Below, in pieces: positions 41,645 to 62,940 of a DNA stretch of 64,000 bases; the stretch's first letter is position 1, and each line of letters starts with the position of its first letter. Made by a program: the position numbers and the translations under genes. The notes beneath the pieces are model-generated. The model was not told the origin of the DNA, made no database searches, and saw nothing but the letters and a program-made list of their open reading frames with translations. Source of the stretch: Oikopleura dioica (Eukaryota; Animalia; Chordata); assembly GCA_907165135.1 (NCBI GenBank), contig OU015567.1, positions 12,896,001 through 12,960,000 on the forward strand, read 5' to 3'.

Positions 41645-43081
<1,437 letters not shown>

Positions 43082-43288: not shown

Positions 43289-44120
43289 ATGGTTTCTTGC
43301 TGCTGCGGATTTGGCAAAAAGGAAGAGCCAACAGAGCCCATCAATCATGAAATCATTCCAAGGTAGGAGTTTTAGAATTAACGAAAATAAAAAAAATCCA
43401 AGTGCACGATCAAAACTTGCAAGTCCTCGATTCGAAGAAGTTTCACTGAACGAAATTGTCATAACTGAACCAAAAGAGCAGCCCAGCAACAAATGCGTGG
43501 GAAAGAAGACTAAAAAGGGGAAACAAGATTGCGAAGAGAAAACTACCGAGGGAAAAACATCTACAGAATTCGCTTTACCTGTAACAACCTTCAACACGAC
43601 AGCTATTGTTGAGCATGTAGCCAGAGGTCTTGGTAATGATTTTTTTTCAATTCAAAGAACCAACAAAAATTTTAGTTGTCGCCCTCATCGTCCAAGACAG
43701 AGTTCAACCGAATACTTCCTTTGCAATCAAGGTTATGACCCCATTTGTAAATATGATGACTGTACTTTCGAAATCAATTTTCAATATAATTTCAGAAAAA
43801 TTTTAATCCCCTGTATATTTTTGTTAGGAATCCTACAGAATGGTTATATTCAGGCGCACAAAGTCAGTACTTCCATTCGGAGAGAATTCAATCGAACTGT
43901 AAAAGCTAAGTATCAACTAGGCCTGCATGTTTAGAGTCACCATTAGTAATGAAACACGAATTCATTACTTTAAGAGCCTGCAAAGTCAGAAAAAGAGCAA
44001 AGACCCCCTGTAAAAGAAACTGACAACGAAGCCAATCTTTTAGATCATAAAATCATCGAAAATGGAGAATTGGTTTATTTTAAATTGTTTCTAGTTACAA
44101 CTGAGAAATAAGCCTCAGTA
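43289..44120 (+). CDS. Uncharacterised multi-exon protein starting MVSCCCGFGKK
   Basis: Acceptor catag|aagATG lies 207 bp after the tubulin stop. The first three exons join in phase through GT-AG introns. The 3' exons and the end coordinate are uncertain. Confidence 0.45.
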
Positions 44121-44293
44121 AATATCCGGTCAGAACAAGATCACAGGATATACATAAGCGAAAAATGAGCTAGAATAAGAAAGGAAAGAACAATAAGCTG
44201 GATAAAGTCAGTTGGAATATTTTTTACATTCACAGGAGTTAGAGAGTTCTGGATCTGGGTCGAGCGGGGCAAGCATTCGTGTTTCCGTGCTGA

Positions 44294-45048
44294 TTACTTC
44301 TTCAGCTGCGGATTACTGTGAATCTCTTCACAGTGCGGCAAAGGACATAAACTTCCACTACAGCAGCCAGTGTCGAAGTGGAATTCGTGAATTTTCAAAT
44401 ACTAAATTAACGCGATAATTGCCAGTTGAAGAAGGATTCAGAGGACTCACAACTTTGCATACACCGCAGATGACCTTTCTTTGGGGCGAAACTTTTAGCC
44501 TCCTCGCTTGTGGACAAAGAGAGAAGTGTTTGATAATCTGTTTCTTGTGTCTGCATGATTGTAAGTCGCATTTCTTGCAGTCCGAAGCGTGTAACAGTTC
44601 CGAAAGCTCTTTTTCTGGGTCGATTGTGTCGTCCGAAGGCATTTGGTAAGAGCGAAGGGATGATGTCTGCCGCCGAGCTGCTTCAGCTTCTTCGATGAAA
44701 TGTTCAAGGAGGGATCAAAAACAACTAGACAACTAGAGAGAATAAATCTTCTTTGGATCCCGTATCTTGTCTGTATCTTTCAAAAAGCGCTTGTCTCTGG
44801 CGCACCTCTCGTTGCCTCACTAGATAGTACCTCGCTCCTCTTCTATCATCCCTATCATTTCCTCGCACGCCCAAGTTCTGGGCTAAGTTTGCCAAAGCCT
44901 CGTTCAAACTCCCTTCAAGCTTTTGTAACAATTTCAATAAGAAAGTCGTACTAGTACCCGTTCTACGAGCCTCTGGAGGAATCTGCATCGCTCGACGATA
45001 TGGCGACGAAAGATTGACTGGCCGTGGAGGTGAGCGAATTCCCGGCAT
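44294..45048 (-). CDS. Small gene encoding an isolated TAZ2-type zinc finger (CBP-derived)
   Basis: Exons 44642-44451 and 44401-44294 give LLHASDCKKCDLQSCRHKKQIIKHFSLC...CGVCKV|YLKIHEFHFDTGCCSGSLCPLPHCEEIHSNPQLKK*, i.e. three HCCC sites. The link to the upstream ORF 45048-44725 is unresolved (in-frame TGA at 44717-44715). Confidence 0.75.
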
Positions 45049-45775
45049 TCTGAAGGCTCAATATCACTATCCTGCAATCGACAATGAGTACAAGTTGTAT
45101 TCAGTACAACTAAGAAAACTTGTTTTTTTCGTATTTATTTTATTTCCTGTCACAAAACAGGACTCGTATTAAATCTTTGCGAGGGATACTAGCGCCATAC
45201 TAGCAGCATACACTACAGTAGAAGATAAAACTACAGTGAGTTGCTTACAAGTTGAAAAAGAGCATTAACGATACAAACTTTAAGTTTTTAACGACGACTG
45301 AAAATAGGAGGATTGAGGTAATTATGTACAGTACATTTTAAATTTTGCTGGATATCTTATTGGTCACGGACGAATAAGAAAAGAACCGAATGGGTGGTAA
45401 AAAGGGTTGGAAAAGTTCAGGAGCTTTGAGTATTTTTCTTTCAGGAATTTAAGTTTTTAAAAAGTTGAAATCACAATGTTTGTTTTGAAGTAAAATTTAA
45501 AATAAAGATACAAAAAAAAATATAGGCTGCGATGGAACGTCAAGTAGAAGTACGTAGGCTGATATTAAAAATAAAAGATAGGCCCGAATTAAATAATCAA
45601 GACCTGGCGGTATGGCTTCTTTGTACAAGGGTTGAGAAATAGAGAGGGGGAGAATGATAAGGGGATTGATAACGGATGAACTTGGTAACTTCCCAGGGGC
45701 AAGGAGGGAAGAAGACTTTATCAGTAGAGAGCTGAGTTTAGTAGGATAGATCAATTTTCATAACGCTGGCGGGGA

Positions 45776-46500
45776 TCAATAGAGATGGCTCTTTCCCGCT
45801 TGGTAGTCGTAACGGCGCAGTGAGGAGTCACGCCGAGCTTTACACAGGACCAGCGTCATCGCCATCGATGCCAGTAATAAACCTAAATAAACAGGTGAGA
45901 AATCGATCCCTGAATTCGGAACTTTGTGACAAGTCTGTCAAAGTTCTTCATCATCAAAATATGCCAACCAATATTCTGGCGAATTATATGGTGGTCTGAA
46001 ATTGGCAAATTCACAGTACAAATATTAGCTGACCGGATCAGCTTAGTATCAAATTGGATGAAAAATAATGACTCTGGATTTGATCCAAAGCATCGTCCCA
46101 AAATCGCTTAAAAATAATGATGATGATAGTTGGCGCGCCACCTGACACGCTGCTTGTCTTTGAACTTACCGACGCAGGATCCGGCGATGACAGCGGCAAG
46201 AAATTTCTTATTCACAAAGTGATCGAAGAGGGAGGCTTCGCTGGGCGACTTGTCGGAGCGGATTTCAGGATTTTCGCTGTCTAAAATTTTGTTATTTCAG
46301 AAAGAAACAATCATTTAATTTGTTTAAAATCATATGCAATTCAAAGCTTACAATTGGTAATGAAATCCCCAGACGCTTCTCCCGATCCTTCGAAATCTTC
46401 ATCATCTAAATTCACGATTTCAATACTTTCAACGGATCAAGGAAGGCTCACCTGATAACTGTGAAAGCACACTTGCTGTTAAAAGTAGCAATCTTCTCAT
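45776..46500 (-). CDS. Minimal syndecan-like type I membrane proteoglycan, 106 aa, 4 exons
   Basis: Exons 46500-46452, 46405-46352, 46280-46170 and 45882-45776 sum to 321 nt, all GT-AG phase 1. Signal peptide, DDEDFEGSGEASGD (Ser-Gly GAG sites), KKFLAAVIAGSCVGLLLASMAMTLVL transmembrane segment, tail CKARRDSSLRRYDYQAGKSHLY*. Not in the ORF track. Confidence 0.8.
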
Positions 46501-49244
46501 TTTTATTCTTTTCTTCTGAAGACGTCTCTATGAAAGTCGTAGTCTTCGTTCTCGTCCGATTTCTATCTCTATCTGTCTGAACTGGATATTGTTGTTAGTT
46601 CACCGAATTGACCAAAATTTTCAGCAAAAAGGAAAATTTGAAAAAAGAAAGGAAAATTCAAGACAAATCTTGTCAAGTGAGCTTGAGAATCTCTCGGGCA
46701 GCGGGGTCGCCCACTGGGGGGCGTCGGAAAACATTGACCCAAATTGGCCCTGAAAAATCAAATTCAGATCATCATTCAACTTTTGTGAAAATTTCCGCAT
46801 CCGTGAAATTTTGGACAGATTTGGCACAGCACAAGGCGTGGTAAATAGACGCACGGGTGCATTTCAAAAAAGAGGAATGTTTATTTTACGAATATCCATA
46901 AAATTGGGGGAATGTTTACGCCTTGATGGGGGCGATCAAAAATTTGTTGGGAATCGTAAATCTTGGAATCAACACGCAATAAAGTATTAAATAGGCTCTC
47001 GGGTAAAGATACGATGGTGGAAAGAAAAACTAAAGATCTTGAGATTCTTTGTGAAACTCAAAATCATTGGTCTTTCCAGCAGCTATATTTGTGTTTAACC
47101 CAATAATGATGGCAAAACACAAATATGGCGAGTCCAGCATGAAAAAATCTCGCTTGTAAACAGGGCATCTTTATCGTTCTCTATCAAGAAGCAATCACTC
47201 TTGACCACCTGATTCCTGTTTACCTCGGTAAACGAAATTCCGGAAGTCATAAAAAATGGGGACCCGGCCGATCACATTCCCAAACTCACTGTCGATCAAT
47301 ATTTTTTTCGACTTTTTTTATATTTATGTAATTTTCAGTCGGGTAATGGCTTCAGAGTTACAGAGCCATAAACAAGTATAAAACAAGTATACAAGTTTAC
47401 AAAAAGAGTTTTTGTTTTGTTTTTGAACCATTGTAACTGTTTGGCTACGTTATATAAATATAACATGATATATTACTATTTTTCGTTGACTTGTGGCGTA
47501 GCAGAAACAATTACAGTGTAGTAGGCGTAATAATAAACAGTTACGTAACCGAGCTGTGCCCAAAACTGGCAATAAAAATGATTGAATTTAGTTTTTAGTC
47601 GGCGTGTTTTGGCCTTGGGCGATGCGTTGTGGCTTGAGGAGGAAATGAACACACGCCCAGGGGCAAAACGAACCGCTTGGTTTGGGCCCAGTGGAAGCGA
47701 TTACGTAATAGAGGTAGCAACATCAACGTAACACAATAATTTATAAATACACAAACAGTTCTTAGTGCTACTCTGTTCTCGGACTCGTCCAGACTTAGCT
47801 CAACAGTTCTGGCGCATTCCGCCAGAAATTGGAGGGAGAGGGAGGATGCGGAACGAACCAGTAAAAACTAAGGCAGCATGTGGAAGGTGATGTGTGTGTT
47901 TTTTTTAAGTTTTTTTTTTAATTAATTAAATTATTTGTCAACAAAAATTGATGCTCATCAGCGATCCACGATAGAATTATGGGACTGATAAAGTTCTCTA
48001 TTAGAGAACTCTCTCTATTTAAAATAGTATATAAATATAAGTTTGGACGTGTTTAAGAATATCTTTATACAGAAGTTGAATAAGTAGAAAAATTGCACTT
48101 GGCCAATTTTTTTAATATTGAAGGATGTCGGCCAGGCTCAAAATTTTTGAAAAATTTTGATCGAATAGCACACGAAATAGAAAAATGGGGGAATAAAAGT
48201 ATACGCCTTTATAATCTTTTCAAGACCGAGAACGGAAAAGGGGGATTTCTTATTGGTAAGAGATAAACTTTAAAAAAGGTTTTGTGGGATGAACTTTTGG
48301 TAAAAATAGTTGTTCGCAATTTTTAAAGCTGGAGAGTAAAAAATAATAATATAAATAAATTAAGGATAAAAGCGGGTTGAACTTAGATTTTGAGCTTTTC
48401 GCGTAAAGGTAAAGGAAATTTTCAATGATTTCTGAATAGGTTGAAGTCATTTGCGGTGAGTCAGCGCTGGACGGGACCAATCAAAAGTATTCTACCAAAT
48501 TTGCGAACGTGGGTGTGTGTAGGTGTGTCAAAAAGGAATTTATATGATCGGAATTGAAAATAAAAAAATGCGAAAGTAATTGTGGCAGCGGTTTCATGAT
48601 TCTAGTTGGGAGATTTTGAAAATAAGAAGGAAAAATCATAGAATAGGACTTTTGGAACCGCTCGCGAACGCCCCCTGCCACGGAGGAATGGAGCGAGCCG
48701 AGGGATGAGAAAGGGCAAACTGGTAACATGGAACCTGGCTGAAGTGGTGGTCAGAATTGAAATGCGATAGATACTGGGTAATCTGGGCCATTTAATTGTT
48801 TTAAGAAAGTGTGACAAAACGGGACCCAAGCAGCATCGGGCAGTAGTGGAGCCGGATCAGATTGATGAACGGAGCCAATCAGATCGATGTATGTGGTTTT
48901 CGGAAAGGAGCATTTGAGGTCTGCCAGCCAATGACTAAGTGGCGGGAAATGTTGGGGAAGACATCGTCGACCATTTTTTTATCTTTTTTGTAGGTTTTTG
49001 AGCAGGTCAGATTTTTTCACCGGTGGCTTCTCTCTAGCTCACTCCTAGCGTAGGTTGTTTTTGGATGGTTAAAACGTAGGTGCATTTTTGATGGGCATTT
49101 GGTATAGCTTGATGAGAACACGGGATTGGCCGAGCGCGCGGTTTTGTGAGGAGTACTGTTTTTGGTTGGGTAGGAAGTTTAGGGAATGAATGAAGAGGAT
49201 GAGGGGAGTGAACGGAATTGTGAGTGGACAACAGTGACAGACAG

Positions 49245-52200
49245 CTACAGTCCATCAACCGTCTGGGCATACGACTGGCTTGGGTCAGCGTTGGGCTGCT
49301 GACCTAGCGGCGGATCGCCCTGGTTGAACATCATGGACTGACCGCTGCTCATGCCCGGCTGCTGAAATCTAGGAGCCTGAGCCATCATCTGAATTGAGAG
49401 TTGTAAGAAATCTGAAACGGAATTGTTAACACCCGGTCGCTATAGTGCGACGCTTACCTGCGGCTGCTGGGGGCGCATCATATTCTGTTGTGCCCCCATT
49501 CCACCTCCCATTCCGTTGCCCATCATTGGCCCGTTGCTCATCATGTTGTTCTGCATCATGTTTGGTTGCATGCCGTTGTTTGACATCGACACTATAGAAA
49601 GAAGTTACGAACACTGAGATCAAGGAAGAGGAAAACTTTGGAAACGAGTATTCTGTGGAGATGGACCTCTATTCATTTGATTCCCAAACGTTCCACTCTG
49701 CATCATGCCCATCTGATTCATCTGGTACATCTGCGAGTTGCCCATGTTGTTCGACATTTGATTAGGCATCATCTGAATATGAGTTGAAAATAGACCGATA
49801 CTAGTATTTCGTATGCTTACCATCCTCGGACCCTGGTTCTGGGGCCAGTTCCTCATCTGATTTTGCATCATCTGGCGAGGTGCGTTAATCATGTTTGGCT
49901 GCATGTTGCTCATCTGATTCTGCATTTGAGGGTTGTCTAAAATCGTCGTTAGCAAAAGATCACTTTGTTAAAGATCGAGAAAAGGTATACTTACTTGGAG
50001 CGCTGATCATCACTCGGTTCTGCGTTTGATTAGGATTTCTGGGATTGATATCGCGGAAAATTTGGGCAACATGTTGCGGATTTTGTTTTAGCACATTGAG
50101 GATCTTACAAATTCTGTTATTTTCTGGCAAAATCTTGGATGTTCTACCTTTGGATCTTTCGGATCAGTTGACTCCTTGATGATTTTGATCGTGTTGTCTA
50201 TATGTTGTTGCGGCTGCTGTTGAGTGTTCATCGGGCTATTGTGGTTGTTCGGGCGTTGGGTGATGAACATGGTTCCTTGCTGCTGTTGCTGCGAGGTCGG
50301 CATGTTATATCCCTGCAAACAGTAAAATACAGAGCTTTATCAAACACCAAATGTGTTCACCAAAAACACTTATCCGTCAAAACTCATCCAACTACTCTCA
50401 TCAAGTCCAACGAGTTTGAGAGGGAACTTATAGAAGTGACTCTCGTTGATTACCTGAGATCGGAAGGGGGGATTCTGTTGAGGAATCTGGTTGTACATAG
50501 ACTGCGGCTATATAAATATATATTAGCGCTTGATCATTTTTTCTTGATTTCGCAGTCTATCCCCGTACAAAAAATATCACCACCATCATCAATTAAATAC
50601 AGCTGAAATGTCAGCCATACGCAAATATACAAATCAGGACACGAATGAAAGAACTGATCGGTATATTTTTATTTAGTAATTGCACCATAATTTATTTAGC
50701 TCTTTGTTTTCTGCGTATACTTACAGGATTATATTGATCACGCATAGACTTGTTTCCTTCTTGAATCGCTTCCTGGACGACCTTGTTGGCGGCTTTGATT
50801 GCTGCCGTCGGTGCGCCGCCTTGACCCTGGTATTGCATTTGTCGCTGGTTCATCATATTCGGACTGCTTGAGTACTGATGCATTTGCTGCTGCATTGGGT
50901 TATTCTGTTGCTGGCCCAGTTTGCCGTTATTTTGCATTTGACCCAATTTACTAGTGAAAAAATACACAACCGATATTTCGGACTAAACGTTACCTTGATC
51001 CTTGCATGCCTCCCTTCGAGGCAACGTTTGGATTCGGCGTTCCTGGATTACCCATAGATGGAGTTGGTGGGCCTGGAGTGGCTGGTCCAGGAGTAGCCGG
51101 AGCTTCGAGCTCTGGGCGAGCCATACGACGACGCATGAGTTTTTCTTGTCGCCGACGGGTGGACTCCTGTTGCATGCGAAGACGCTGCTTGATTTGAGCA
51201 CAGTAGTTGATCTTACAGGACTTTTCTTCACAATGTTTTGCGTGGTAGCAACAGAGAGCGATGAACTTAAATTTCGGTAAACATTTTGATCATTTCAGAT
51301 GACATTTACCTGTTTGCAAATGTTACATTGCTGGTTGTTCTTCTGCTTCTGTTTCATTTTAGCACATCGCTTAGAATGCTCGATGATCTTTTTCATCCTA
51401 GAAATAGATTGTTAGTCTCAGTTTGAAAGGACAGAAAGGAAGAGGAAAGATCCACTTACTTTTGACAGTTGGGTCTGTTGCAGTTTGCGTCTCGGCACTT
51501 GGCAGAATGAACCAAGTTCTGAATGCACTGTTGGATGCCTTCTCTTCGTTTCTCGTTGGATGTCATAGAATCGTTATCATTATTGCCTCCAAAGATGCCG
51601 TTGTTGGCGACCTTCTTTTCGAGCGGCTGATGTTCGTGTTGCGAACCAATAGCATCGTTGCACTTGGCGCAGAGGTCGAAGTCGCTGCAGACCTTGCAGT
51701 GGAATCGTGTGGTGATTCGGGCGTCGCAGTTGTTGCAGGAGAAGGTTTCGGAAGAGAAGCGATTGTCAGGATTGTGAAGGGTGTACAAAAAGCACATGGA
51801 TGAGTACTTGGTTCTTCGGAGAGTCGAGAACTCCCAATGCTCGTCTCGAGCTTTGTTCAAGAAGGGATCTCGTCCGTCCATCAAGTCGCAAGGCATGTCC
51901 TTGTCGGGATCCTCGATCGCAGGGAGAGCAGGTACACTGTCGGCAGAATGCATACGAATGACGAAAAAGACTTCTTTGTGTCGCTCCATGAGGCTGTTCA
52001 ACTTGGACATCAAGTCTCCTCCGCCTTTGTTATTTTTGTTTCGTTTCTGATTCTTCTTCTTCGATTTCGCCTTGTCGCTGTACATGCCGTCATCATTGGC
52101 CATTTCTGCTTCTTCAGCGGCTTGCTCTTTCAGGACTTCTGCGATGAGATCCTCGATGGCAGTCGGCCAGAAATCACCGTCGAAGTAGGGCATTTGGGTA

Positions 52201-55200
52201 GCGCAAACAACGCCGTCATCTTTAGCCTATACTGGTTTAAAGAAACGCCCGAATGAGGGGGTCAGTACCTGTGAATAGATGTCTTTGAATTCGGTAATAA
52301 CGCCACGGTCTTGTGCCTTATTTAAAATCGTTCTGTACCAATCACAAAGTCGCTTGGATCTGGGCATCTTCATCTCCTGAGGGTGGCAGTGGAAGATGTA
52401 GTCATCTCCCTCAGATGGTGGACAAGACCAGATGTGGGCCCAGACATATCCTAAGTTTCGGCAGTATTCAAGATATCCTAAAAAGAGAATTTAAGAGTTG
52501 AAAGTTGACATAAAAGACGTACCCATAATAAGTTCGTGGTAAACGCCTGTTCTGAGACAAGCAGGCTGGAAGAATTTAACAGAATCGAGGTATCCAATAT
52601 AAACGCGGCGCTGGTTTGGCGAAGGGCACTTATCATCGTATTCCTGCACGTGAAGGCCAAAGAAACAGACATCGACGCCTTCGATTTGCTCGAAAGCGAA
52701 GAGGACTTTTGCGCGGAATTTGAACTTTTCGGCGATTGGGTATCCAGCTGTTTCTCCCTCTTTGCGGACGCCAGAGCGCGTTTCGACGGCCTTGTTGCCC
52801 ACGAAAACAGTACGAATGTACACATGTCCTGCTTCGTTGTTTTTGTCATTAGCTAAAGAATAGTTAGAAAAAGCTTGTGTGATTTAAAAGTTTACCAGTG
52901 ACGTAGCCGTTGACCTTGGCCTCGATAAACTTGGACAATTCAGTTTCCGGCAAGTTTTCGGCTGTGAATGGATTCTTCTTGCGCCGCTTGGACGTATTGT
53001 CCTGGCAGAAGTCGCAGATGAAATCCTTCCAAATCTCCTTTTTATAAAGGACGCAGATTTGGTGATTCTTTCGCCCGCAGCGTTTACATTTCTGGAAGGG
53101 CTCAAAGTCTCGCGTATCGTTTTTGCTCTTTGAGAACTTCGTTTTTGGCTGGAGAGCGGGATTGTCGGGATCACTACTCGTTGCGATGCTGAAAAAATAT
53201 TCGTAAATAATGAGTTTTTATTATTGAATCTTACGTGTCTCCCTTGGCATCACCGAAACACTTTTCGCAGTAGTAGATTTTCTCGGTAAATTGAGGACCA
53301 GGAACATTCATCGGAATAGCTGGACCCGTCGTACCGTCACTCTCGTAACAGTAGTACCAGCTTCCCACGCTGATAGTGCAGGTTGTCTTGCCAAAACAAC
53401 AAAGAGGCAATGCGGTCCATGTTAGAGACTAAATTATTGCAATTAAAACGATAACAAACGTAATTAACAAATTACCTGGGCACAACAAAAGCCATTTCTC
53501 CTCATGGCGGGCTCTGCAGCTCGCAAAAACTCCTCTTTAAGTTTTGTGCACATCCGATACACCCGTGAGTTCTTCTTATTGTAAAGCCAGGCATTCTCAA
53601 ACATAAGCCACATATCTTTGATGAATTCCCAAGGCTCCTCATAAGTTCCCATTTCCAACTTTGTATTCATCGTTGATAAATCCATTGGGTTCTTGACGAC
53701 TTCAGGGTAGTCGGGAATACCGAGTGCGACTGGGTCGACTGGTATTTGAAATGGTGGGGCGTCTTGATGCTCGTAAACCTTCCTCCAAATAGGCATGAGC
53801 ATGTCCCTCAATTCCTGAGCGCTCCATTTCTTTAGCGTTCCGGGGTCGGTCTCCTCCTTGACCTCTTCCTTCTGCTTTTTCGAAACAGGGCTTGGGCTTG
53901 GCGCGGGGCTTTGGGCCTCGCGTTTGATCGGGCAGGGTTTCGCATCTGGGGGCATGTTCGGTTTCTCTTCATTTTCCTGTTTTATCATCGAGCCATTTTC
54001 ATTTTTAAACGAGGATTGTGTTGTGTTAATTTGCGGTTTGACATCTCCAGCGTTACTTTGCTGATTATTAAAGGACTTAGATGGGTTTTGCTGCGTATTT
54101 TGCACATTGGGCTTTGTCTCGACGCCAGGCTCTGATTTCACCATATTTGAGTTTGGCATCTGTTGGTTTTGATTCTGGTTGTTCGGCGTACTCGGACTCA
54201 TGAAGTTCTGCCCCGGTTTTCCGGAGTTCATCTGGCCAGGAGTTTGCGCGCCAGGCTGACCTGGATTCTGTTGATTCCAACTTGGCTGACCAGAAGGCTG
54301 TTGATTCGGCTGTTGCTGCATGTTTCCTGGACCTTGGTTGTTTTGGAAGCCACCTTGTTGCTGATTTCCTTGCTGTGGCATTCCCGGGTTTTGCCCCTGC
54401 CCTGGATTTTGCTGATTTTGGCCAGGAAACTGCGGATTAGGCGGACGAGGCATTCCTCCTTGATTCGGGCCTTGACTCGGTCCACCTGCAATTGCAGGAT
54501 TTTGAGCTGGATTTCGCTTCAGCTCGAGTTCTTTTTGAATTTTGTAAATTTTCTCGGCGAGCATGTGATAGTAATCCTCCCTCGTCGTAGCTTTGTTGTA
54601 CATATCTTCCTCGACGCGTCTCGCGAATGAAAACAACTTCACAATGCGCTCGTCATTCGCATTCGTCGAGTTATTTGTTTGATCCGTGCCGGGGAAGATA
54701 GCAGAAACGAGCTTCTTCACGAGATGTTCTCGTAGTTCTGAGTTGACGTCAGCTCTCCAGTTGCCGTTAGCGACTTGGTTAGGGTTGTTGGTATTGTTTT
54801 GGCCGCCTTGCGCGGGTTGTTGCCCGGGCTGATCAGCAGTCGGTGGCCGTTGACCCTGTTCATTGGCATTTCCAGCCGCGTTTCCTTGAACAGCTCGATT
54901 CGGATCGTTACCGCCGCTCGGATGCTTGAGCGGCTGGCAGACTTGGCACTGTTGATTCTTACACTGCTTCCAATGGGCGATAATGTGCCTCGACGAGCTA
55001 CAATGCTGGACCGGACAGTTCTTCGCCATTTGACAGCTGGGCAAATGCTCGAGCACGTTTTTCATCGTCTGACAATGAGGAATTTGACATTGGGTGCCTT
55101 GAGCGTCATTTCTCTTCGTACACTTTGCTGCGTGGATCAAAATAATTAACTGGTTCTGTATCATCTTGCGCTTCTCCGGGTCCTGCGTTGCCGTACTATT

Positions 55201-58200
55201 CGCTTGATTCGATAACTGTTGCTGATTCGGCGGTACGTTTGGATTGTGGTTCGGGTTCGGCATTTGCTGATTCGGGCCAGACTGCACCATCATGGTTCCA
55301 TCATTTGGATGGTTCCCGTTCGTCATCGCCATTCTCGGGTTCATCGGAGCCATCGGTCGCATATTCTGAGGCATGTTCATCCCAATCGGCTGGCCGTAAA
55401 CTTGCCCACCCGGTCGATGCATCATGCCTGGATTCATCTGCATTTGGTTCGGCATCATGTTCATGTTGCCCATGTTCATTTGTTGCATTCGCATTTGGTT
55501 CTGCATGCCCGGTGGCATTTGGTTCATCTGGTTCGACATGCCTCCTTGCTGATTCTGTACCATCGTCGGCTTCGCCACGCTCTGGAGCATCGTGTTCACA
55601 TGTTGCTGTGTGTTATTCGGTCTCATCTGATTCGGCTGGTTCCCGAAGTTGCCCTGGAAACCCTGTGGGTTCTGCGGAGTCATCCTAGAAAACATCACTT
55701 TTTAAAACGCGCCCAAGAATGGGAGAGAGCTCTTACTGTCCCATCATATTCGGATTAAAGCTGTTCATGTTAGGCGTCGTCACCCTCATTGCCTGGCCAG
55801 AACTGGCGGGTGGCACGCCGGCCGGAGCTGGCGAGCGGATATTATAAGAACTCGGGCCAGGCGACGGGCTGAACAATTTGTTTCAGAATCATCGGCAGTC
55901 AAGTCAACAATCAAGTTTTTGATTTTTTGAAAAAAATATTTGATTAGTTTCAAGAAAAACATGCTTGATTTCAAAGTTAACAAGGATCATTTGGGAGCAA
56001 TTTCAAAATTATTTTTAGTGATAAAGAACGAGCCAATACGCTGGCAAAGAGTAATTTTTCTTTTGAATATTTCTATAATTAAAAATGTCTTCTTTTCTAG
56101 TGCTAACTCACATCATTGTCAAAGATGCTTTCTTTTCGAAACAATATTTATTTGCAAAATTATCTCCATCCACGCTCTCTTCTCCCAAATCAGCCAAATA
56201 CAGTCATGAGAAGTCAAAAAATATGTGTTTTTGAGCTGGTGCTCCTTCTTGCGCCGCCTCCGACGAGCAGTGCGACTTTGAGCGCCAACCTACGCGCGGG
56301 GCGCAGCTGGCGGCAATAGCAGAGCGCGGTGGAGCAGAATCGAAACAATTCAAAATTAACACTAGAATTAGCCATCAATCGGCCTAATCATCCTTCGATT
56401 CTCAAAACAAGTCTTTGCCGAAGAAATTTCATAAAGAAAATTTGTCCGGAATTTAGTTCAATAGGAAATTATTAGCCCCAAAAGACGGGGTATTTTTAAT
56501 TGCTGTCTGGAAAATATACATCAATAAAAACGACCTCTTACAGGTCCAAAACGAAAGAAAAGTTATACTCAGCTACTAAAATTGACCTCAAATGACTCCA
56601 TGTGGAAGAAAATCAAACATAAATATTTTTTCTCTTGTGGTTTGACATCTGTTGAATCATTTTTGTTTTGGTTTTTGAAAATGTTCCGAAGCCCGTCTAT
56701 TTCTACACATTTTCAAAAAACATTCTGTCTACAAGACCGAGGTCTTATCAAATTCTTCTCTAGACCAAATTTTATCTGTTCTTATTTTCTTATTCAAGTT
56801 CTTTAGTGTGCCCTTACAAGCCTCTCAAAAAGGTGAAAAGAGTTTTCTGATCAACAATTTTACAACTATTTTAGTACTGAAGATGGATCTATTAGATCCG
56901 AAAGCTTTACTATGAATAAACCAAAACAAAAATGATAAATATTTTTTCTTGAAATAAAAAAACTTCAATTGTGAAATTTTGAGAAACCAGAGAAAATAAT
57001 ACCTCGGCGTTATAACTCGGTTAGGCGAGGGAGTAGGCATTGGCATAGGCACATTGGTCTGCTGTGGCCGATACTGGTTGCTCCCGTTCATCATTTGATT
57101 CATCGAGTGATTTGGCATTGAGTTCGACATTGACGAGGTCGGCATCGAGTTGTTCTGATGCGAGGGAAACTAGATTGAGTTATTCTTTCAAGAACGGGGG
57201 AGGCGAATATCAAGAAAAGGGTAAGACAAAATTAGTGTGGCGACGAATAGGGATGGGTTAGGGATGATTTTTCTGGGGTTAGCTCCTGAAAAGCAGCTGC
57301 TTTTTGATTCGAAAGGAAAATTGAGGGGAATGGAAAATTTAGATCGAATTCAACTTTCTTCCTCAAGAAAGACTTTCTCGCGGAAAATTGCATGGAATCT
57401 CGAGTCGTTCCAAGTCAATGAAATAATGTAGAAAGATTCGATTGAAAATTTTATGGACTGAAATCTGATATCATAAAAGAGGACCTTCAGAAAAGTCTGA
57501 TGAAAAAGAAAGTTGAATTCTCAGTGAAATTATTCCACATCAACGAGTAATAAAAAGGGTGTAAAATATAAATCATGCTTTTTAATTTTTTTAAATTCAT
57601 ATTTTTCAAATCTAGAGTCACGACAAGAAAGCACAGAAGATTTATAAAAATGTAATGTTTTTTCGACTTACGCCATACGAGTTTGCATCAAGATTGTTGC
57701 TCCACTAGTGGATAAACAAATGATTAGAATTCGTTTTTTAGAAAATCTTGTGAAATAGGAAGGGGATGAAGAGTTGTTGCTTACCTGGTTCATCGAGGAA
57801 CCAATCGGGTTAACATTATTTTGATTCGTGCTCATTCCATTACTCTGTCCGCTGTTTTGGTTCGACGGATTCTGTGGATTCTGCCAGTTCGGATTCATAA
57901 TTATTTTAATTAAAAAATCTCTGCTAAAAAAACTTGAAAATAAAGCGTGGGAAAATTTTTCAGTGATCAATCGATTGTAGATTTTCTCCGCGTGCGCTCA
58001 TTGGCTCCCAAATTTGACAGAATAAAAAAATGTTGTCAAATGGGCTTTCAATTGAAGAAAATAAACTTTCGAATGTTTCGCAGTTTACTTTAGTCTTTAT
58101 CCTCTGATATGGAATAATTTTAAAATTGCGCAGGCTTAGCTCTGCAATCTGTGTAGAAAACCTGAGTCGGGCCTGAAAGTCGGAACCTGTCTCAGGGTTT

Positions 58201-58800
58201 CTGCATGGATTGCCTGGAAACCAAAATTTGATTCTGATTTTTTGTTCTGAAAAAATCTTCGTGAATCCTTGACAAAAGCTCGTCGACATTGTTGACTTGA
58301 TTCTGGTTGTCGTTGGAGCCGCTGAAGATGGAATCGAGCACGTTGTTCTGCTGATTCATCGGGTTCACTGCAATTTCGCTGCTTTCTGAGATTCGCGGCC
58401 GTTTAGAAGGCGGTCCAATTGCGGAGTCCGTGCTTCCGAGGGTTGAAAAATTTCATCAAACTATCAATTCTGATTTCAACTTCGAATTATATTTACAAAA
58501 TTTAAAATTATAAATTTCACTCAAAGAAGAAAATTCATCGAAAAAAAACTCTTTTTCAAAACTTTCTTTCCTAAAAGAATAAAAGCAAAATTTTTTTCGG
58601 CTCGAAAAAAAAATCTTGCAGAAAATTTCTTTCCCAAAATAAAGTTCCCAAATTTTTTTCAGAAATCGAAAATTGGCAAATTTTAAATTTCCTATCAAAA
58701 TTTATTTCTTTCGTTTCAAAAAATTTTTCATCTTTTTCGACACGAAAAAAAAGAAGATTCTACCCAATCCCCTGAAAGGTCCTCCTTGCTGGAAGGCCAT
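49245..58800 (-). CDS. CREBBP/EP300: CREB-binding protein / p300 histone acetyltransferase, full length
   Basis: N-terminal GPPSKRPR, TAZ1, KIX (REHLVKKLVSAIFP...YYHMLAEKIYKIQKELE), bromodomain, RING/PHD region, HAT (VYIGYLDSV, HIWSCPPSEGDDYIFHCHP, KRLCDWY, PYFDGDFWP), ZZ, TAZ2, and NCBD (ILNVLKQNPQHVAQIF). Stop at 49245. The start ATG (58800) and first junction are tentative. Confidence 0.97.
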
Positions 58801-59399
58801 TCCTTGCTCCGTGTCAATCTTGAAGATTTTTCATCTGAAAAAATGAGTCTCGAAATCTAGCTTCGTTTTTTCTACCGTGGATTCTATTTTTCATGCAAAA
58901 ATGGCGCTTTCTGTGAATTTCGGAACTGATGAAAGTGAAAAGAAAAATGGTGAAAGATGGGGATTCGCGTCTTTTTCCGCCCGCGTTGACTTTTTTCTCG
59001 AAATCGAATTCTATAGAATCTCCGTCTATTTGATGTTTTCTTTCCTTCTGCAATTTTCTATCCGTCCATCGGACATTTCTGCTCTCCCGCCCACGTATTT
59101 TTCAAATTGAAACAAAAAGACCCTTATCGTCGATTCTCCCCGACTTTCTTTCCCTCCCCTTCGATGATTTTCCCTTTTCGTGAGTGATTTTTTCATGCAA
59201 TGTTTAATATAATGAATCACCTGTATTTTAGCTCAATTGCTGTTCTTTCGTACGTTCTCTCTTTCGTTCAAAATTTTTGTCTCTAGAATTTTTTTTCGCT
59301 TCCAAAAAATTTTCGCTCCCAGCTGCGTCTTCTTCGGCACAGGAGTTTTTCTTTGAAGAAAAAATTTTTCGCCCTTTTCGGGGCGTTTTCTCTGAGCTG

Positions 59400-59760
59400 A
59401 GCGTTTCTGAGCTGAGCTCGGTGTGTGAGAGATGCTGGGTGAGATGCTGGAGAGAGAGAGTTGCGGCGTGTTGCGGCGCGTTGAATCTAAAATTCGCGTC
59501 GCTCTGTTTTCGCGGTGCACCCGATCCGGACGCGGCGCTCGGCCAATCAGCGGACGCGCGCGGCGCTAGTCGCCCACCCGCGGCGGCGCACACCAAGTTG
59601 ATTCGCCAGTTTCAGCGCCACATCCGAAAATGCCCACTCATCGAGCCCTAGTAGCGCGATGAGTCAACCCAACTCACAGCGCCGCCCCGAGCGTTATTGA
59701 CTGAATCGCACGAGAGCTCAACTCTCACTTTTCAGACTGATGGAGGGCGCTTTTTCCCCC
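59400..59760. promoter_or_regulatory. GC-rich probable bidirectional promoter of CBP and the TAZ1 mini-gene
   Basis: Locally GC/CpG-rich island between divergent genes. GGCCAATCAGCG at 59541-59552 is identical to the CCAAT box at 41357. Confidence 0.5.
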
Positions 59761-60556
59761 GATCTCGTTTGAAGCGCATTTTTCACTGAATTTCCTCTCG
59801 AAAACTTCTTCCCTTTCTAGTTTATCTAGGCCAAGCAACAAAGTTAAAAATGGAAAGATTTTGAGATAAAACATTTGTAAAATTCATGGAAAAAATGAAT
59901 TCGCTGAATATCCCCATGTTCACGGACCCTTGATCGGGAGTATCTCTTGGAGTCCAAGACTAGAACTCGTTGACAATTGCTTGAGAGCGTCGTTATAATT
60001 GTGAGCAAATGGCAGACCTAAAACTCCTTTAGGTTATCGAGATGGTGGTAATATTTTCGCAATTCACACATTATATCTGTCTTGAAAATATATTTCCAAA
60101 TAAAAATGAAATAATCAGGGACAACAAGCGTGATAACGCCCACTCTGTAAATTTTCTCATAAGTTCGAGGTTGAGAGAGTCGGATATCAGCAAGTTCCTG
60201 ACAGCAACTATTAGAACTACTTTTCCGTCGTGGAACTCGATAGATCACCGCCTGGGAACCGTTTGAATAATTGCGACGTCACACGGTTTGATAACTCACG
60301 AGCTGGAGCCTTTAGCTCCTCTTTCACTTCAGGACTCCTCCGTTAGTTTGTTCAAAACAACGAAGAGAAAGAAGACATACCAGAAAAACAAGCACCAAAA
60401 CTCGTTTTTACCAAAGCTTCTTTGAGGTACTAGTCGATTTTAATGATAAGAGAAAGCGCGTTTGATAGCAAGGAGGAGTCCAGATCCGATAATGAATAGA
60501 TTATTCAGAATTGTATTCAATTTTATAGATAAATTTGATAATTTTTATCGATAAGG

Positions 60557-61092
60557 ATGACGATCAACACTGGCGGCGCTGCTATGATCGACTATCTCTG
60601 TGAAATAACCGAGCCTGTTTATGAATACACCCGAAAACCCCTCCGAAAAGACAAGCGAAGACTTCCTGAACATATGCTCAAGAAGCGACTTTCCTGGGTG
60701 CGTGGCTCGATGATGACCTTGATCCATACGATGAAGTGCATCAACGGCTTCTATGGCAAGCGCGGGGCTAGTTGCAGAGTCAAACACTGCGACGATATCA
60801 AACGAGCGATCGAGCACATGCCCTTTTGCACGATGGATAGATGGTGCATCACACAGTATTGTATCGCCACGAAGACAATTGTTCATCATTGGAGGAAAGG
60901 TTCGATGGAATTAATTCAGAATTTCAGAATTTGTTCATTCAAGTAGAAAATTAATCCCTCTATTTGATTTAAATTTGTATTTATTTCAACAACGATCGAA
61001 CTCAAAAAAGAAACTGCAGAAAAATCAATTGTCCAGTTTGTAAACCCTTTCGCGACGGAAAATTCGACAAACTCAAAATTCGAAATCGCTAA
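60557..61092 (+). CDS. Small gene encoding an isolated TAZ1-type zinc finger (CBP-derived); further 5' exons possible from about 60330
   Basis: Exons 60557-60894 and 61011-61092, joined by an inferred GA-AG intron, give LIHTMKC...SCRVKHCDDIKRAIEHMPFCTMDRWCITQYCIATKTIVHHWR|NCRKINCPVCKPFR...*. All 12 zinc ligands align with CBP TAZ1. Confidence 0.8.
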
Positions 61093-61894
61093 TTCTTAGA
61101 ATAAGTCCTGCTCGAAAATAGAAATAAATATAATTTTAAAGGAAGCTGCCTTGACGACCTTCTCTACTTCATTCTTTGATAGGTCGGCGATCTAAGATCG
61201 TTCTTTTAGTCGGAGGTGAAAGTTCTGTGGCTAATTGAGTTTAAAGTCATCGTGAAGTAACGTGCCCAAACCCCTAGCTCGCCCACATTTTGCGAACATT
61301 TTTCCCTTGCTCGCTGAGTTAAATTTCATCAAATGGCGCTCCATCAACCTGCCGCAAAAGCGAGTTTTCATTTTAACTTGCTGGTACAACGATGTCGCAG
61401 TCGTTGATCCTTCGCCTCTCTCTAGCTGGAGTTCCTTCTAGTGTAGCGTGATTTGTTTCGATAACGTTGAGTTCAAATATTCGAACATTTTCAACCCTGT
61501 CCTTGACCATAATTTACTCTCCATGAAGCTCAAAAAATTGACAAAAACGAAAATTTCTGAAGAATTCACTCTGTCCCGTGTTTTATACATCTCCAAAGGG
61601 TCATACTCAGGGGCGACTAATATTTCCCTTCGTATGAATGAAAAGTTCAGAGATCACCTCTGGAATTTCTCCTCTCAGTTGAATTTTCTAATAGGATAAT
61701 GTTAGGAGTTTTCACGTAAGCTAGTAAAAAAAGGGAAATATATTCCACACCGACTAAACTTTAGTCACTAAAGTCGTAAATATTTATTTGACTCGTTTAA
61801 TTTTTTTTTGGTAAAATTCTTCTATCGATCATAAATCATGTCCCTTCCTGGCTGGCTGGCGAACAGAAGCAGCAAAAAAGGAAAAAATCAAGTG

Positions 61895-62292
61895 ATGAAA
61901 ATCTTCAAGTACTTCAATTTTCTCCTAGCGTTGATGTCTTTTCCCACCATTTTCTATCCAGCAAAATCGGACGAGGATATTAACAAGTTGATAGACCAGT
62001 GTTCAAAGTTTGAACTTCAAACGGTAAGCAGCTGTAAACGATGTAGAAAATCATGTTTGTAGGGGATTCCGAACAACAAAAATGGCGGTTGGTGAGCAAA
62101 ATTTTCAGCAACCCGACGATTCTATCGGAGCTCAAAGAAAAACCCGTCCGATCATGCACGGGTTTTGCTGACACCATAAATACGATTGCAGCAGTCGGCG
62201 TTGATTCTGCCCTAGAAAGCGGAGATATATTTTTTCAAACAATGACTTCGACTTTTGGCTTTTTGGGCAATTTTGATTATGGAAAAAAATAA
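61895..62292 (+). pseudogene. Frameshifted paralogue A of the secreted ...GNF(D/N)YGKK protein
   Basis: Exon 1 (61895-62023) and exon 2 (62063-62292) are out of phase. Removing 14 nt at 62002-62015 restores LIDQCSNG|DSEQQK, matching paralogue B (LIDICSNG|ESENK), and gives 114 aa. Confidence 0.6.
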
Positions 62293-62529
62293 ACGTAACA
62301 GTGTGTAAAATCTCAGTCTGCTTTACTGCTAACTAACGGGGTAGCCCATCAAAAGTACTGTAAATCGTCCAAAACTGTCGTCTGTCAACAAAGAGGCCCT
62401 TATGTTAATACGAGGTTCAAGTGACTTGGTAGCTATCGACACGTGTTTATTATAAATATTGTATTTTCTTTTAAAATTAAAATGTCAGTATATAAGCCAG
62501 ACAAAAAGTTATGTAAGCAGAATCGAACA

Positions 62530-62940
62530 ATGAAAATTGGCAAAATTTGTCTTTTATTCGCGTCAGTGATAGCTTCTGGCCCAAGTTCTTATTTGGCTTG
62601 CTCGACTGTTGAGACAATCGCGTTATTTACCTTGATAGACATTTGCTCCAACGGTAAGGAAATTCTAAAAATTCATCTCTCGAAATCGCTTTTAGGAGAG
62701 TCTGAGAATAAAAGGGAGCAGCTGATGAGGAAAATTTTCAATGAACCAAAAATTCAATCGGAGATCGAAGAAAAACCATTTCGGTCATGCATGGATTTTC
62801 TCAACGAAGTCAATCAGCTAATAGCAAATCCTACAACTGTTGCTGAAGCTGATCATACGCCGGAAGGGGAAGATCCTTTTTTGCAAACTTCTTATACTTC
62901 TTTCGGCTTTATGGGAAACTTTAATTATGGAAAAAAATAA
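62530..62940 (+). CDS. Secreted 122-aa protein with C-terminal Y-G-K-K (putative amidated peptide/hormone precursor), paralogue B
   Basis: Exons 62530-62653 and 62696-62940 (42-nt GT-AG intron). Signal-like MKIGKICLLFASVIASG, Cys in CSNG and RSC shared with paralogue A, C-terminus SFGFMGNFNYGKK*. Confidence 0.75.
   Translation: MKIGKICLLFASVIASGPSSYLACSTVETIALFTLIDICSNGKEILKIHLSKSLLGESENKREQLMRKIFNEPKIQSEIEEKPFRSCMDFLNEVNQLIANPTTVAEADHTPEGEDPFLQTSYTSFGFMGNFNYGKK

Follow-up and report, generated by a model that had tools for sequence, protein, structure and literature searches.

Two small genes encoding single TAZ-type zinc fingers, of probable old descent from CBP/p300, flank the CBP/p300 gene of Oikopleura dioica

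Hundreds of transcription factors compete, through the TAZ1 and TAZ2 fingers, for CBP/p300 as a limiting hub. Free TAZ proteins that evolved naturally would act on this competition as built-in regulators. A TAZ finger located outside a histone acetyltransferase is found in the plant BTB-TAZ (BT) proteins, where it serves as a protein-interaction module. To our knowledge, cbp-2 and cbp-3 of C. elegans, about whose function little is known, are the sole studied natural case of free TAZ proteins. These two genes are local partial duplicates of cbp-1, with all three genes contained within 160 kb; the HAT domain is absent from both copies, and CBP-3 retains the first zinc finger (TAZ1) only (PMC10320766). 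The two copies are expressed, and RNAi of each altered reporter activity (PMC10320766). Artificial release of TAZ1 offers a further mechanistic precedent: over-expressed p300 CH1 peptides lowered activity of the EPO promoter (PMC7865418).

We analyzed a 64,000-nucleotide stretch of O. dioica contig OU015567.1 (hereafter the window, to which all coordinates refer), in which the CBP/p300 gene has one small TAZ gene on each side (Table 1). The first coding ATG of CBP is likely that at 58359; both it and the Q/N-rich upstream exons of the gene come from reading the sequence alone. At its other end the gene has its own stop codon and 3' UTR, based on spliced reading and a contig of the X30 metatranscriptome. 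The first-pass annotation described a TAZ1-only gene head-to-head with the 5' side of CBP, and this gene was recovered: it lies on the plus strand and points away from CBP, and ~2.2 kb separate its ATG (60557) from that of CBP. The first-pass annotation further described a TAZ2-only gene about 4 kb past the 3' end of CBP. Its place and strand held, as the CBP stop codon lies 4.2 kb upstream on the common strand, but the gene is not TAZ2-only: the spliced contig encodes a product of about 213 aa rather than 99 aa. As had been claimed for the HAT, bromodomain and KIX, Pfam and tblastn revealed no HAT (KAT11), bromodomain, KIX or ZZ in either small gene, and when the products of every CBP exon were compared with the window by tblastn, no relics of KIX, bromodomain, PHD, HAT or ZZ were found near them. 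Likewise, Pfam detected no BTB domain in either gene, and Rfam found nothing over 43-62 kb of the window.

Table 1. Coordinates of the CBP/p300 gene and the two flanking small genes in the window.
Feature	Coordinates	Strand	Basis or content
CBP/p300 coding region	49245..58359	-	Pfam, spliced reading, X30 contig
CBP exon	53464-55698	-	TAZ1 (about 54922-55182), KIX and bromodomain by Pfam
CBP HAT	52491-52823	-	Pfam
CBP ZZ	51456-52193	-	Pfam
CBP TAZ2	about 51170-51545	-	Split by introns 51398-51459 and 51266-51309
CBP intron	49389-49457	-	Removed in X30 metatranscriptome contig
CBP stop codon	49245-49247	-	Spliced reading
TAZ1 gene coding exon 1	60557..60894	+	ORF, Pfam zf-TAZ; end fixed against L001
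TAZ1 gene intron	60895..61010	+	116 nt, GA..AG in window; predicted from sequence comparison
TAZ1 gene coding exon 2	61011..61092	+	Conserved in L001; TAA stop
TAZ2-type gene coding exon 1	44764..45048	-	95 aa, orphan basic region; X30 covers 44764-44902
TAZ2-type gene intron 1	44700..44763	-	64 nt, non-canonical; joint seen in contig 1 of X30
TAZ2-type gene coding exon 2	44451..44699	-	Linker and zinc sites 1 and 2; X30 contig
TAZ2-type gene intron 2	44402..44450	-	49 nt, GT..AG, phase 0; joint in X30 contig
TAZ2-type gene coding exon 3	44294..44401	-	Zinc site 3; TAA stop 44294-44296

The TAZ1 gene has two coding exons, and its spliced product, according to the sequence-derived gene model, is 139 aa long. 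Exon 1 (113 codons plus 2 nt) encodes a conserved 46-aa N-terminus and most of the finger, while exon 2 contributes the third zinc site (C115, C120, C123) and a short tail ahead of the stop codon, past which an AATAAA is present at 61123-61128. All 12 zinc ligands (H57 C61 C73 C78 / H87 C91 C97 C102 / H111 C115 C120 C123), which the first-pass annotation had described as intact, are in the canonical TAZ1 spacing of H-x3-C-x10-12-C-x4-C / H-x3-C-x5-C-x4-C / H-x3-C-x4-C-x2-C. Full-length spliced proteins were handled in scripts, and only exon products were submitted to Pfam, structure prediction and exact look-ups. Exon 1 alone scored 34.7 bits against Pfam zf-TAZ (PF02135), above the 25-bit gathering cut-off, and the best PDB sequence matches of the protein were CBP/p300 TAZ1 (E about 1e-6). 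An AF2 model of exon 1, which spans three of the four TAZ1 helices, had a pLDDT of 70; its top five Foldseek matches were all CBP/p300 TAZ1, with probabilities of 0.91-0.99, TM scores of 0.47-0.61 and E-values of 0.2-0.6. These results point to the TAZ1 fold class for the finger.

Relatives of the TAZ1 gene are present in Tara metagenomes, where ORFs matching exon 1 were 98% (P0001) and 76% (P0002) identical. Sequences from two wild Tara relatives, L001 and L002, define its structure further. The intron, exon 2, the position of the stop and all 12 zinc ligands are conserved in L001, and the ATG is likewise conserved. As donor dinucleotide the intron has GA in the window; L002 has GG and L001 has GT. 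A cut at 60895-61010 is the only one that keeps the window and L001 both in frame, a TAG following the donor in L001. Amino-acid identity to L001 is 72% compared to an identity of 47% at third positions, with pN of 0.17 and a saturated pS of 0.79, and L002 differs by 5 synonymous changes and 1 non-synonymous change. Thus, sequence comparison demonstrates strong purifying selection on the TAZ1 gene, in agreement with the earlier suggestion that its fold is under selection. With respect to RNA, no dataset among those listed matched this gene. Raw RNA reads X4-X6, which bear the same species label, aligned only in short blocks (90-95% identity) whose flanks did not match; their source is a divergent lineage, which makes them uninformative regarding expression of the small genes here.

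The TAZ2-type gene is real and spliced. A contig of the poly(A) (oligo-dT) X30 metatranscriptome splices out both of its introns, and part of the gene is present in 5 RNA runs. Removal of the 64-nt intron fuses two ORFs in frame, whereas its retention leads to a stop at 44725. The exact cut is ambiguous by 2 nt, and placing it at 44765/44702 yields AT..AC; this joint is known from one low-depth contig and could represent a deletion allele instead of an intron. The fused product joins a 114-aa orphan N-terminus in frame to a divergent TAZ2-type finger, and the 3' UTR extends to at least 44103, with an AATAAA at 44074-44079. In a single-sequence AF2 model the N-terminus forms two long helices (residues 33-59 and 65-94); it had no Pfam match and no usable match in the ESM Atlas.

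The finger itself has 12 ligand-type residues in the TAZ2 order, including the C-x2-C pair of the middle site (H132 C136 C139 C144 / H153 C157 C173 C176 / H186 C191 or C192, C197 C202). The claim that all zinc ligands are kept thus stands with respect to the residues; their spacing is altered at site 1 (C-x2-C versus C-x4-C in CBP) and site 3 (H-x4/5-C versus H-x3-C in CBP). Unspliced exon pieces scored 20.3-21.8 bits against zf-TAZ compared to the cut-off of 25, with exon 2 giving a partial match at 20.3. The best PDB matches of exon 2 were p300 TAZ2 (E 0.004), and the spliced finger aligned colinearly with TAZ2 of the window's CBP over 89 residues (E 4e-10). Protein searches and a scan of JGI metagenomes identified no orthologue. 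The 64-aa finger exon and the 107-aa upstream ORF retrieved nothing in a word-based protein search limited to lengths of 35-112 aa and 59-187 aa, in which an annotated product of 213 aa would go unseen; this result is hence not evidence of absence. In addition, 351 pattern matches to the 83-aa exon in the JGI scan included none that was confirmed.

Both small genes lie close to CBP, the TAZ2-type gene within about 4 kb and the TAZ1 gene about 2 kb away, and the first-pass annotation attributed them to local partial duplications of CBP. A free "quick" tree of 139 TAZ domains was unresolved, with the TAZ1 gene falling in with other sequences on long branches. A constrained tree uniting the TAZ1 copy with window-type CBP TAZ1 was 31 lnL units better than the free tree, and was not rejected by the AU test (p 0.82). 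Our call on the origin of the TAZ1 gene therefore draws on character states together with the test of the constrained tree: the TAZ1 copy and the window-type CBP TAZ1 group have in common four derived residues that are seldom seen among 121 other TAZ1 domains. For the TAZ2-type gene, the phase-0 intron at 44402..44450 occupies the same position in the domain as CBP TAZ2 intron 51266-51309, a shared feature that rejects origin as a retrocopy. Identity to CBP's own fingers is only 32% for the TAZ1 copy and 21% for the TAZ2-type copy, and recent duplication is rejected on this basis. Taken together, the shared derived residues, the AU test and the common intron support the view that both small genes are old partial duplications of the lineage's own CBP.

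On balance, we consider it probable that these are two real, independently transcribed genes of old CBP descent that encode non-catalytic binders with a single TAZ finger each. Since neither carries a HAT, bromodomain, KIX or ZZ, both proteins would most likely bind activation domains of transcription factors without catalysis. That the proteins bind zinc, reside in the nucleus and bind such ligands is a prediction, as is the direction of any effect on CBP. The proteins could compete with CBP for activation domains, acting as decoys; alternatively, their N-terminal parts could bridge activation domains to something else, and it is in this sense that we infer a role as decoy or adaptor. In the TAZ1 small gene, many near-invariant residues of TAZ1 domains, both on the surface and in the core, are altered, and its ligands may therefore differ from those of CBP, which weakens the simple decoy model.

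This divergence of the binding surfaces speaks for a somewhat unlikely alternative, that the proteins are adaptors rather than decoys. Here the conserved N-termini, consisting of an acidic-hydrophobic helix and a basic patch in the TAZ1 protein and a leucine-rich helical pair in the TAZ2-type protein, would be functional partners of the fingers, either recruiting another complex to TAZ-bound factors, as in plant BTB-TAZ proteins, or directing the protein to places other than CBP sites. Residues 1-46 of the TAZ1 protein are as well conserved between divergent lineages as the finger, and the TAZ2-type protein has 114 additional residues with two predicted long helices, both consistent with adaptor function. 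However, no known family in Pfam or the Atlas matches either N-terminus, and the helix models are of low to moderate confidence. More speculatively, and in our estimate less likely still, selection in the larvacean lineage may long have maintained two dedicated free TAZ proteins, their surfaces re-modelled and their N-terminal modules new, as a natural competitor/adaptor layer that would re-wire access of transcription factors to CBP; the conserved acidic-hydrophobic N-terminal helix of the TAZ1 protein could gate the finger as a built-in mimic of an activation domain.

We likewise considered whether the TAZ2-type gene is a decaying duplicate, transcribed and spliced without a functional zinc finger, or encoding only the 107-aa ORF if the 64 nt are retained. 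Decay would fit the identity of only 21% to CBP TAZ2, the changed spacing of the ligands, Pfam scores below the cut-off and the failure of the word-based search and JGI scan to find an orthologue, as well as the fact that the ORF-fusing intron is non-canonical and seen in one contig only. Nevertheless, 12 of 12 ligand-type residues were retained despite heavy divergence, the ORF is open through three exons, and poly(A) RNA of the gene is present in several environmental studies. Moreover, X30 differs from the window at 1 site in each of two upstream coding pieces, compared to 8 sites plus a gap in a piece that is mostly 3' UTR. In light of these findings we regard decay as improbable. That the small genes are not separate, being alternative terminal exons of CBP or pieces of a larger neighbouring gene, is highly improbable: although the TAZ2-type gene is on the CBP strand 4.2 kb downstream, and an acceptor-like AG directly precedes the ATG of both genes (CAG immediately 5' of ATG 45048), making upstream exons or trans-splicing possible, CBP ends in a stop and 3' UTR of its own, X30 depth is zero in the intergenic bins beside the TAZ2-type gene, including 45700-48499, an AATAAA-like run lies ~90 nt upstream of the TAZ2-type ATG, and the TAZ1 gene, whose ATG and stop are conserved, lies on the strand opposite that of CBP.

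The favored reading, that of two old, non-catalytic TAZ binders beside CBP, would add to the worm genes a second system, independent of them and open to experiment, in a culturable chordate with a small genome, comprising a TAZ1-only protein under selection and a TAZ2-type protein whose N-terminus is new. The first-pass annotation was aware of no description of the arrangement in chordates, and no chordate example of a HAT-less TAZ protein was present among the clusters looked up; beyond chordates it is not unprecedented, given C. elegans cbp-2/cbp-3 and gene models from protostomes. HAT-less models with TAZ1-type zf-TAZ as their sole Pfam domain occur in many protostomes, and examples with multiple TAZ1 copies include Watersipora XP_067942658.1, Ixodes XP_029836739.2, Mytilus CAC5370960.1, Heterodera KAL3086952.1 and Planococcus XP_065216757.1. 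Like the TAZ1 gene of the window, these models are short and have zf-TAZ as their only Pfam domain, but they contain 2-3 tandem, near-canonical TAZ1 copies, whereas each window gene has one highly diverged finger. Some may be annotation fragments. The many unstudied models suggest that the phenomenon is recurrent and overlooked.

As in C. elegans, the window contains HAT-less partial CBP duplicates located close to CBP. In the worm the copies, for long called pseudogenes, still show a close alignment with cbp-1, in contrast to the window copies, which are 21-32% identical to the CBP fingers. Further distinguishing the window from the worm, purifying selection clearly acts on the TAZ1 copy, the other copy combines a TAZ2-type finger with a new N-terminus, the host is a chordate, and the copies sit one on each side of CBP. 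Plant BT proteins combine their finger with a BTB domain and a calmodulin-binding region, unlike the window genes, which are without a BTB domain. Finally, the TAZ1 protein resembles isolated p300 CH1/TAZ1 fragments, in which free TAZ1 is able to titrate activation domains off p300/CBP (PMC7865418); those fragments are artificial constructs with a native surface, whereas the TAZ1 protein of the window has an altered surface and its binding is predicted.

Both of the small genes that the first-pass annotation had placed on either side of CBP/p300 as stand-alone TAZ genes proved to be real, but the downstream copy is not TAZ-only. The locus lies in a compact genome with short introns, and near-identical DNA was present in runs carrying the same species label as well as in marine metagenomes. 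Introns of 46-116 nt with G(A/G/T)..AG donors fit a larvacean, for which 11-12% non-canonical introns have been reported (PMC8008620). Features of CBP/p300 and of the downstream gene are summarized in the table.

Features of CBP/p300 and of the downstream TAZ2-type gene (window positions)
Feature	Position	Strand	Basis
CBP/p300 Q/N-rich upstream exons, to ATG	58359	-	sequence reading only
CBP/p300 exon, 744 aa (TAZ1, KIX, bromodomain)	53464-55698	-	Pfam
CBP/p300 HAT	52491-52823	-	Pfam
CBP/p300 ZZ	51456-52193	-	Pfam
CBP/p300 TAZ2, interrupted by two introns	51398-51459, 51266-51309	-	spliced reading
CBP/p300 intron	49389-49457	-	absent from metatranscriptome contig (spliced out)
CBP/p300 stop codon, frame open to here once 49389-49457 is removed	49245-49247	-	contig and sequence
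TAZ2-type gene, finger exons noted in the first pass	44451-44642, 44294-44401	-	sequence
TAZ2-type gene, 49-nt GT..AG intron between finger exons	44402-44450	-	predicted, then absent from X30 contig

Just upstream of the region lies an ORF with an alpha-tubulin-like product (42149-42913, plus strand). Two adjacent small plus-strand ORFs (61838-62292 and 62443-62940) have signal-peptide-like starts and products terminating in F-G-F-x-G-N-F-x-Y-G-K-K; by sequence they look like a pair of amidated-peptide precursors.

The ORF of the divergent plus-strand gene (the TAZ1 gene, ATG 60557) scored 34.7 bits against Pfam zf-TAZ (cut-off 25), and its product matched CBP/p300 TAZ1 chains among solved structures (E ~1e-6). 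The relatives recovered by a word search were two ORFs from Tara Oceans metagenome scaffolds, P0001 (scaffold L002, 98% identity) and P0002 (scaffold L001, 76% identity). The intron was placed by aligning the DNA of the window, L001 and L002. Since a TAG directly follows the H-H-W-R codons in L001, the donor there must be a canonical GT, right after TGGAG. At this one site the dinucleotide is GA in the window (60895-60896), GG in L002 (~406) and GT in L001 (449), with the frame kept, a small natural series for a relaxed +2 donor position. With the acceptor at 61010, both the window and L001 lineages encode a 139-aa protein with its stop codon in the same position, and exon 2 contributes N-C-x4-C-x2-C, a precise match to zinc site 3 of TAZ1. 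The putative ligands, said in the first pass to be intact, number 12 here and have canonical TAZ1 spacing (H57 C61 C73 C78 / H87 C91 C97 C102 / H111 C115 C120 C123). The likeness of L002 to the window (98% over exon 1) ends ~50 nt into the intron, from ~position 445, and the tail beyond matched nothing anywhere in the window; this could reflect an intron insertion, a structural variant removing exon 2, or a chimeric scaffold.

Between the window and L001, the TAZ1 gene showed 72% amino-acid identity, with pN 0.17 and a saturated pS of 0.79; identity was 47% at third codon positions versus 82% at first and second positions. Relative to L002, 5 changes were synonymous and 1 non-synonymous. These comparisons indicate strong purifying selection, as the first pass had suspected, and extend it to the 46 residues N-terminal to the finger. 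For the exon-1 product alone, AF2 (pLDDT 70) predicted three TAZ helices, preceded by a short helix at the N-terminus and a disordered linker of basic character; the best five Foldseek matches of this model were all CBP/p300 TAZ1 (probability 0.91-0.99, with weak E-values).

Part of the TAZ2-type locus was present in five RNA runs, all from poly(A) libraries of environmental samples, and we placed the best match (X30, a metatranscriptome run) and three raw-read runs on positions 43900-49899. A 686-nt X30 contig aligned to 44103-44401, 44451-44699 and 44764-44902, indicating removal of the 49-nt intron and of an extra 64-nt segment. Because depth was zero in neighbouring bins (45700-48499) and the CBP/p300 intron was spliced out in the same run, the X30 contigs are RNA. 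Transcription was thereby confirmed for the TAZ2-type gene, whereas the TAZ1 gene was found in no indexed RNA run. The 64-nt segment (44700-44765, minus strand), seen in one X30 contig at depth ~2, has non-canonical ends that read AC..AT, TA..CA or AT..AC given a 2-nt ambiguity (AT..AC if cut at 44765/44702), and its absence could instead represent a deletion allele. Its 3' end, TCCTTGAAC, resembles a U12 branch-site motif, although larvaceans reportedly have no minor spliceosome. With the 64 nt removed, an upstream ORF (ATG 45048, with a TGA in frame ahead of it) joins the finger ORF in one frame, so that the product is 213 aa instead of 99 aa. The gene starts 4.2 kb past the CBP/p300 stop. 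Its ATG directly follows an acceptor-like CAG and has an AATAAA-like run ~90 nt to its 5' side; in the TAZ1 gene an AG lies <=2 bases from the ATG in all three lineages. The AG motifs at the two ATGs would be consistent with splicing in the 5' UTR or with trans-splicing of a spliced leader.

Between CBP/p300 and this gene, X30 contigs also mapped to 45403-45672 and 48548-48861, and RNA reads of a divergent lineage matched short blocks only, with unlike flanks (45512-45562, 47355-47407, 47540-47565 and 47701-47755). No ORF, Pfam or Rfam match explained the transcribed pieces at 45403-45672, 47355-47755 and 48548-48861.

The N-terminal 114 residues of the TAZ2-type protein are basic (pI 11) and matched no Pfam family or Atlas cluster; a single-sequence model predicted a Pro-rich disordered start followed by two long helices. 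Its finger (132-202) was colinear with the CBP TAZ2 of the window over 89 residues (21% identity, 53% positives, pairwise E 4e-10), matched p300 TAZ2 chains more closely than TAZ1 chains, and has the C-x2-C pair as its middle site, in TAZ2 fashion. Ligand-type residues were kept at 12 of 12 positions, but spacing was altered, site 1 (C-x2-C) being two residues shorter than in CBP and the His-to-Cys gap of site 3 two residues longer. Orthologue searches were empty, although the length window of the word search would miss an annotated 213-aa protein. The X30 contig differed from the window once in each of two upstream coding pieces and at 8 positions plus a gap in the mostly-3' UTR piece, a pattern that hints at constraint and is the sole sign of it for this gene.

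We compared all CBP/p300 exon products with the entire window by tblastn. Near the two small genes only TAZ fingers were recovered, with no relics of KIX, bromodomain, PHD, HAT or ZZ, in agreement with the first-pass annotation as to KIX, bromodomain and HAT. The TAZ1-gene finger shared only 32% identity with TAZ1 of the adjacent CBP, a domain that is itself nearly unchanged in several marine metagenome ORFs (e.g. P0019, P0021, P0027 and P0028). Since a claim of novelty depends on a lack of relatives, an exhaustive profile search was run; of the 97 proteins that it recovered (E <= 0.001), P0001 and P0002 alone were close. A quick tree built from 139 TAZ domains gave no resolution; when the TAZ1 gene and the CBP TAZ1 domains of the window type were constrained to group together, the tree lay 31 log-likelihood units above the free search (p-AU 0.82). 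The derived states 17 I, 47 E, 50 P and 54 M (domain positions) occur in both TAZ1-gene lineages and in 64-91% of the window-type CBP group, versus just 4-15% of 121 other TAZ1 domains. Moreover, the 49-nt TAZ2-type intron (phase 0, after C-x2-C-K-x) shares position and phase with the CBP TAZ2 intron at 51266-51309. Taken together, the constrained tree, derived residues and shared intron support an origin by partial duplication, at the DNA level, of the CBP of this lineage, as had been proposed, although the identities (32% and 21%) place the events far back, with long divergence since. Many positions nearly invariant in TAZ1 are replaced in the TAZ1 gene, so its ligand surface probably differs from that of CBP.

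A decoy role would be a reasonable proposal. Over-expression of p300 CH1 peptides lowered the activity of a HIF-dependent promoter (PMC7865418). A role as adaptors is a serious rival, because both small proteins have extra N-terminal parts.

The best non-self matches in the profile search were short proteins whose sole domain was 2 or 3 TAZ1 fingers, with annotated examples in Watersipora, Mytilus, Heterodera, Globodera, Ixodes, Strigamia, Oedothorax, Nucella, Planococcus, Homalodisca and Leptopilina; no chordate names occurred among the 20 clusters looked up. HAT-less models with 2-3 tandem near-canonical TAZ1 fingers (P0003-P0024) are present in bryozoan, mollusc, nematode, tick, spider, centipede and insect genomes, a set that appears to be recurrent and is not described in the literature searched. 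For larvaceans and other chordates, full-text searches returned no account of free TAZ genes, but the kind is known. C. elegans cbp-2 (TAZ1 and KIX) and cbp-3 (TAZ1 only), which lack HAT, lie <=160 kb from cbp-1 and are considered partial duplications, are expressed, and their RNAi alters reporter activity (PMC10320766). They already exemplify HAT-less partial CBP copies near CBP; in contrast to them, the genes described here are new in their chordate-like host, in the new N-terminus of the TAZ2-type copy and in a TAZ1 copy that is clearly under selection.
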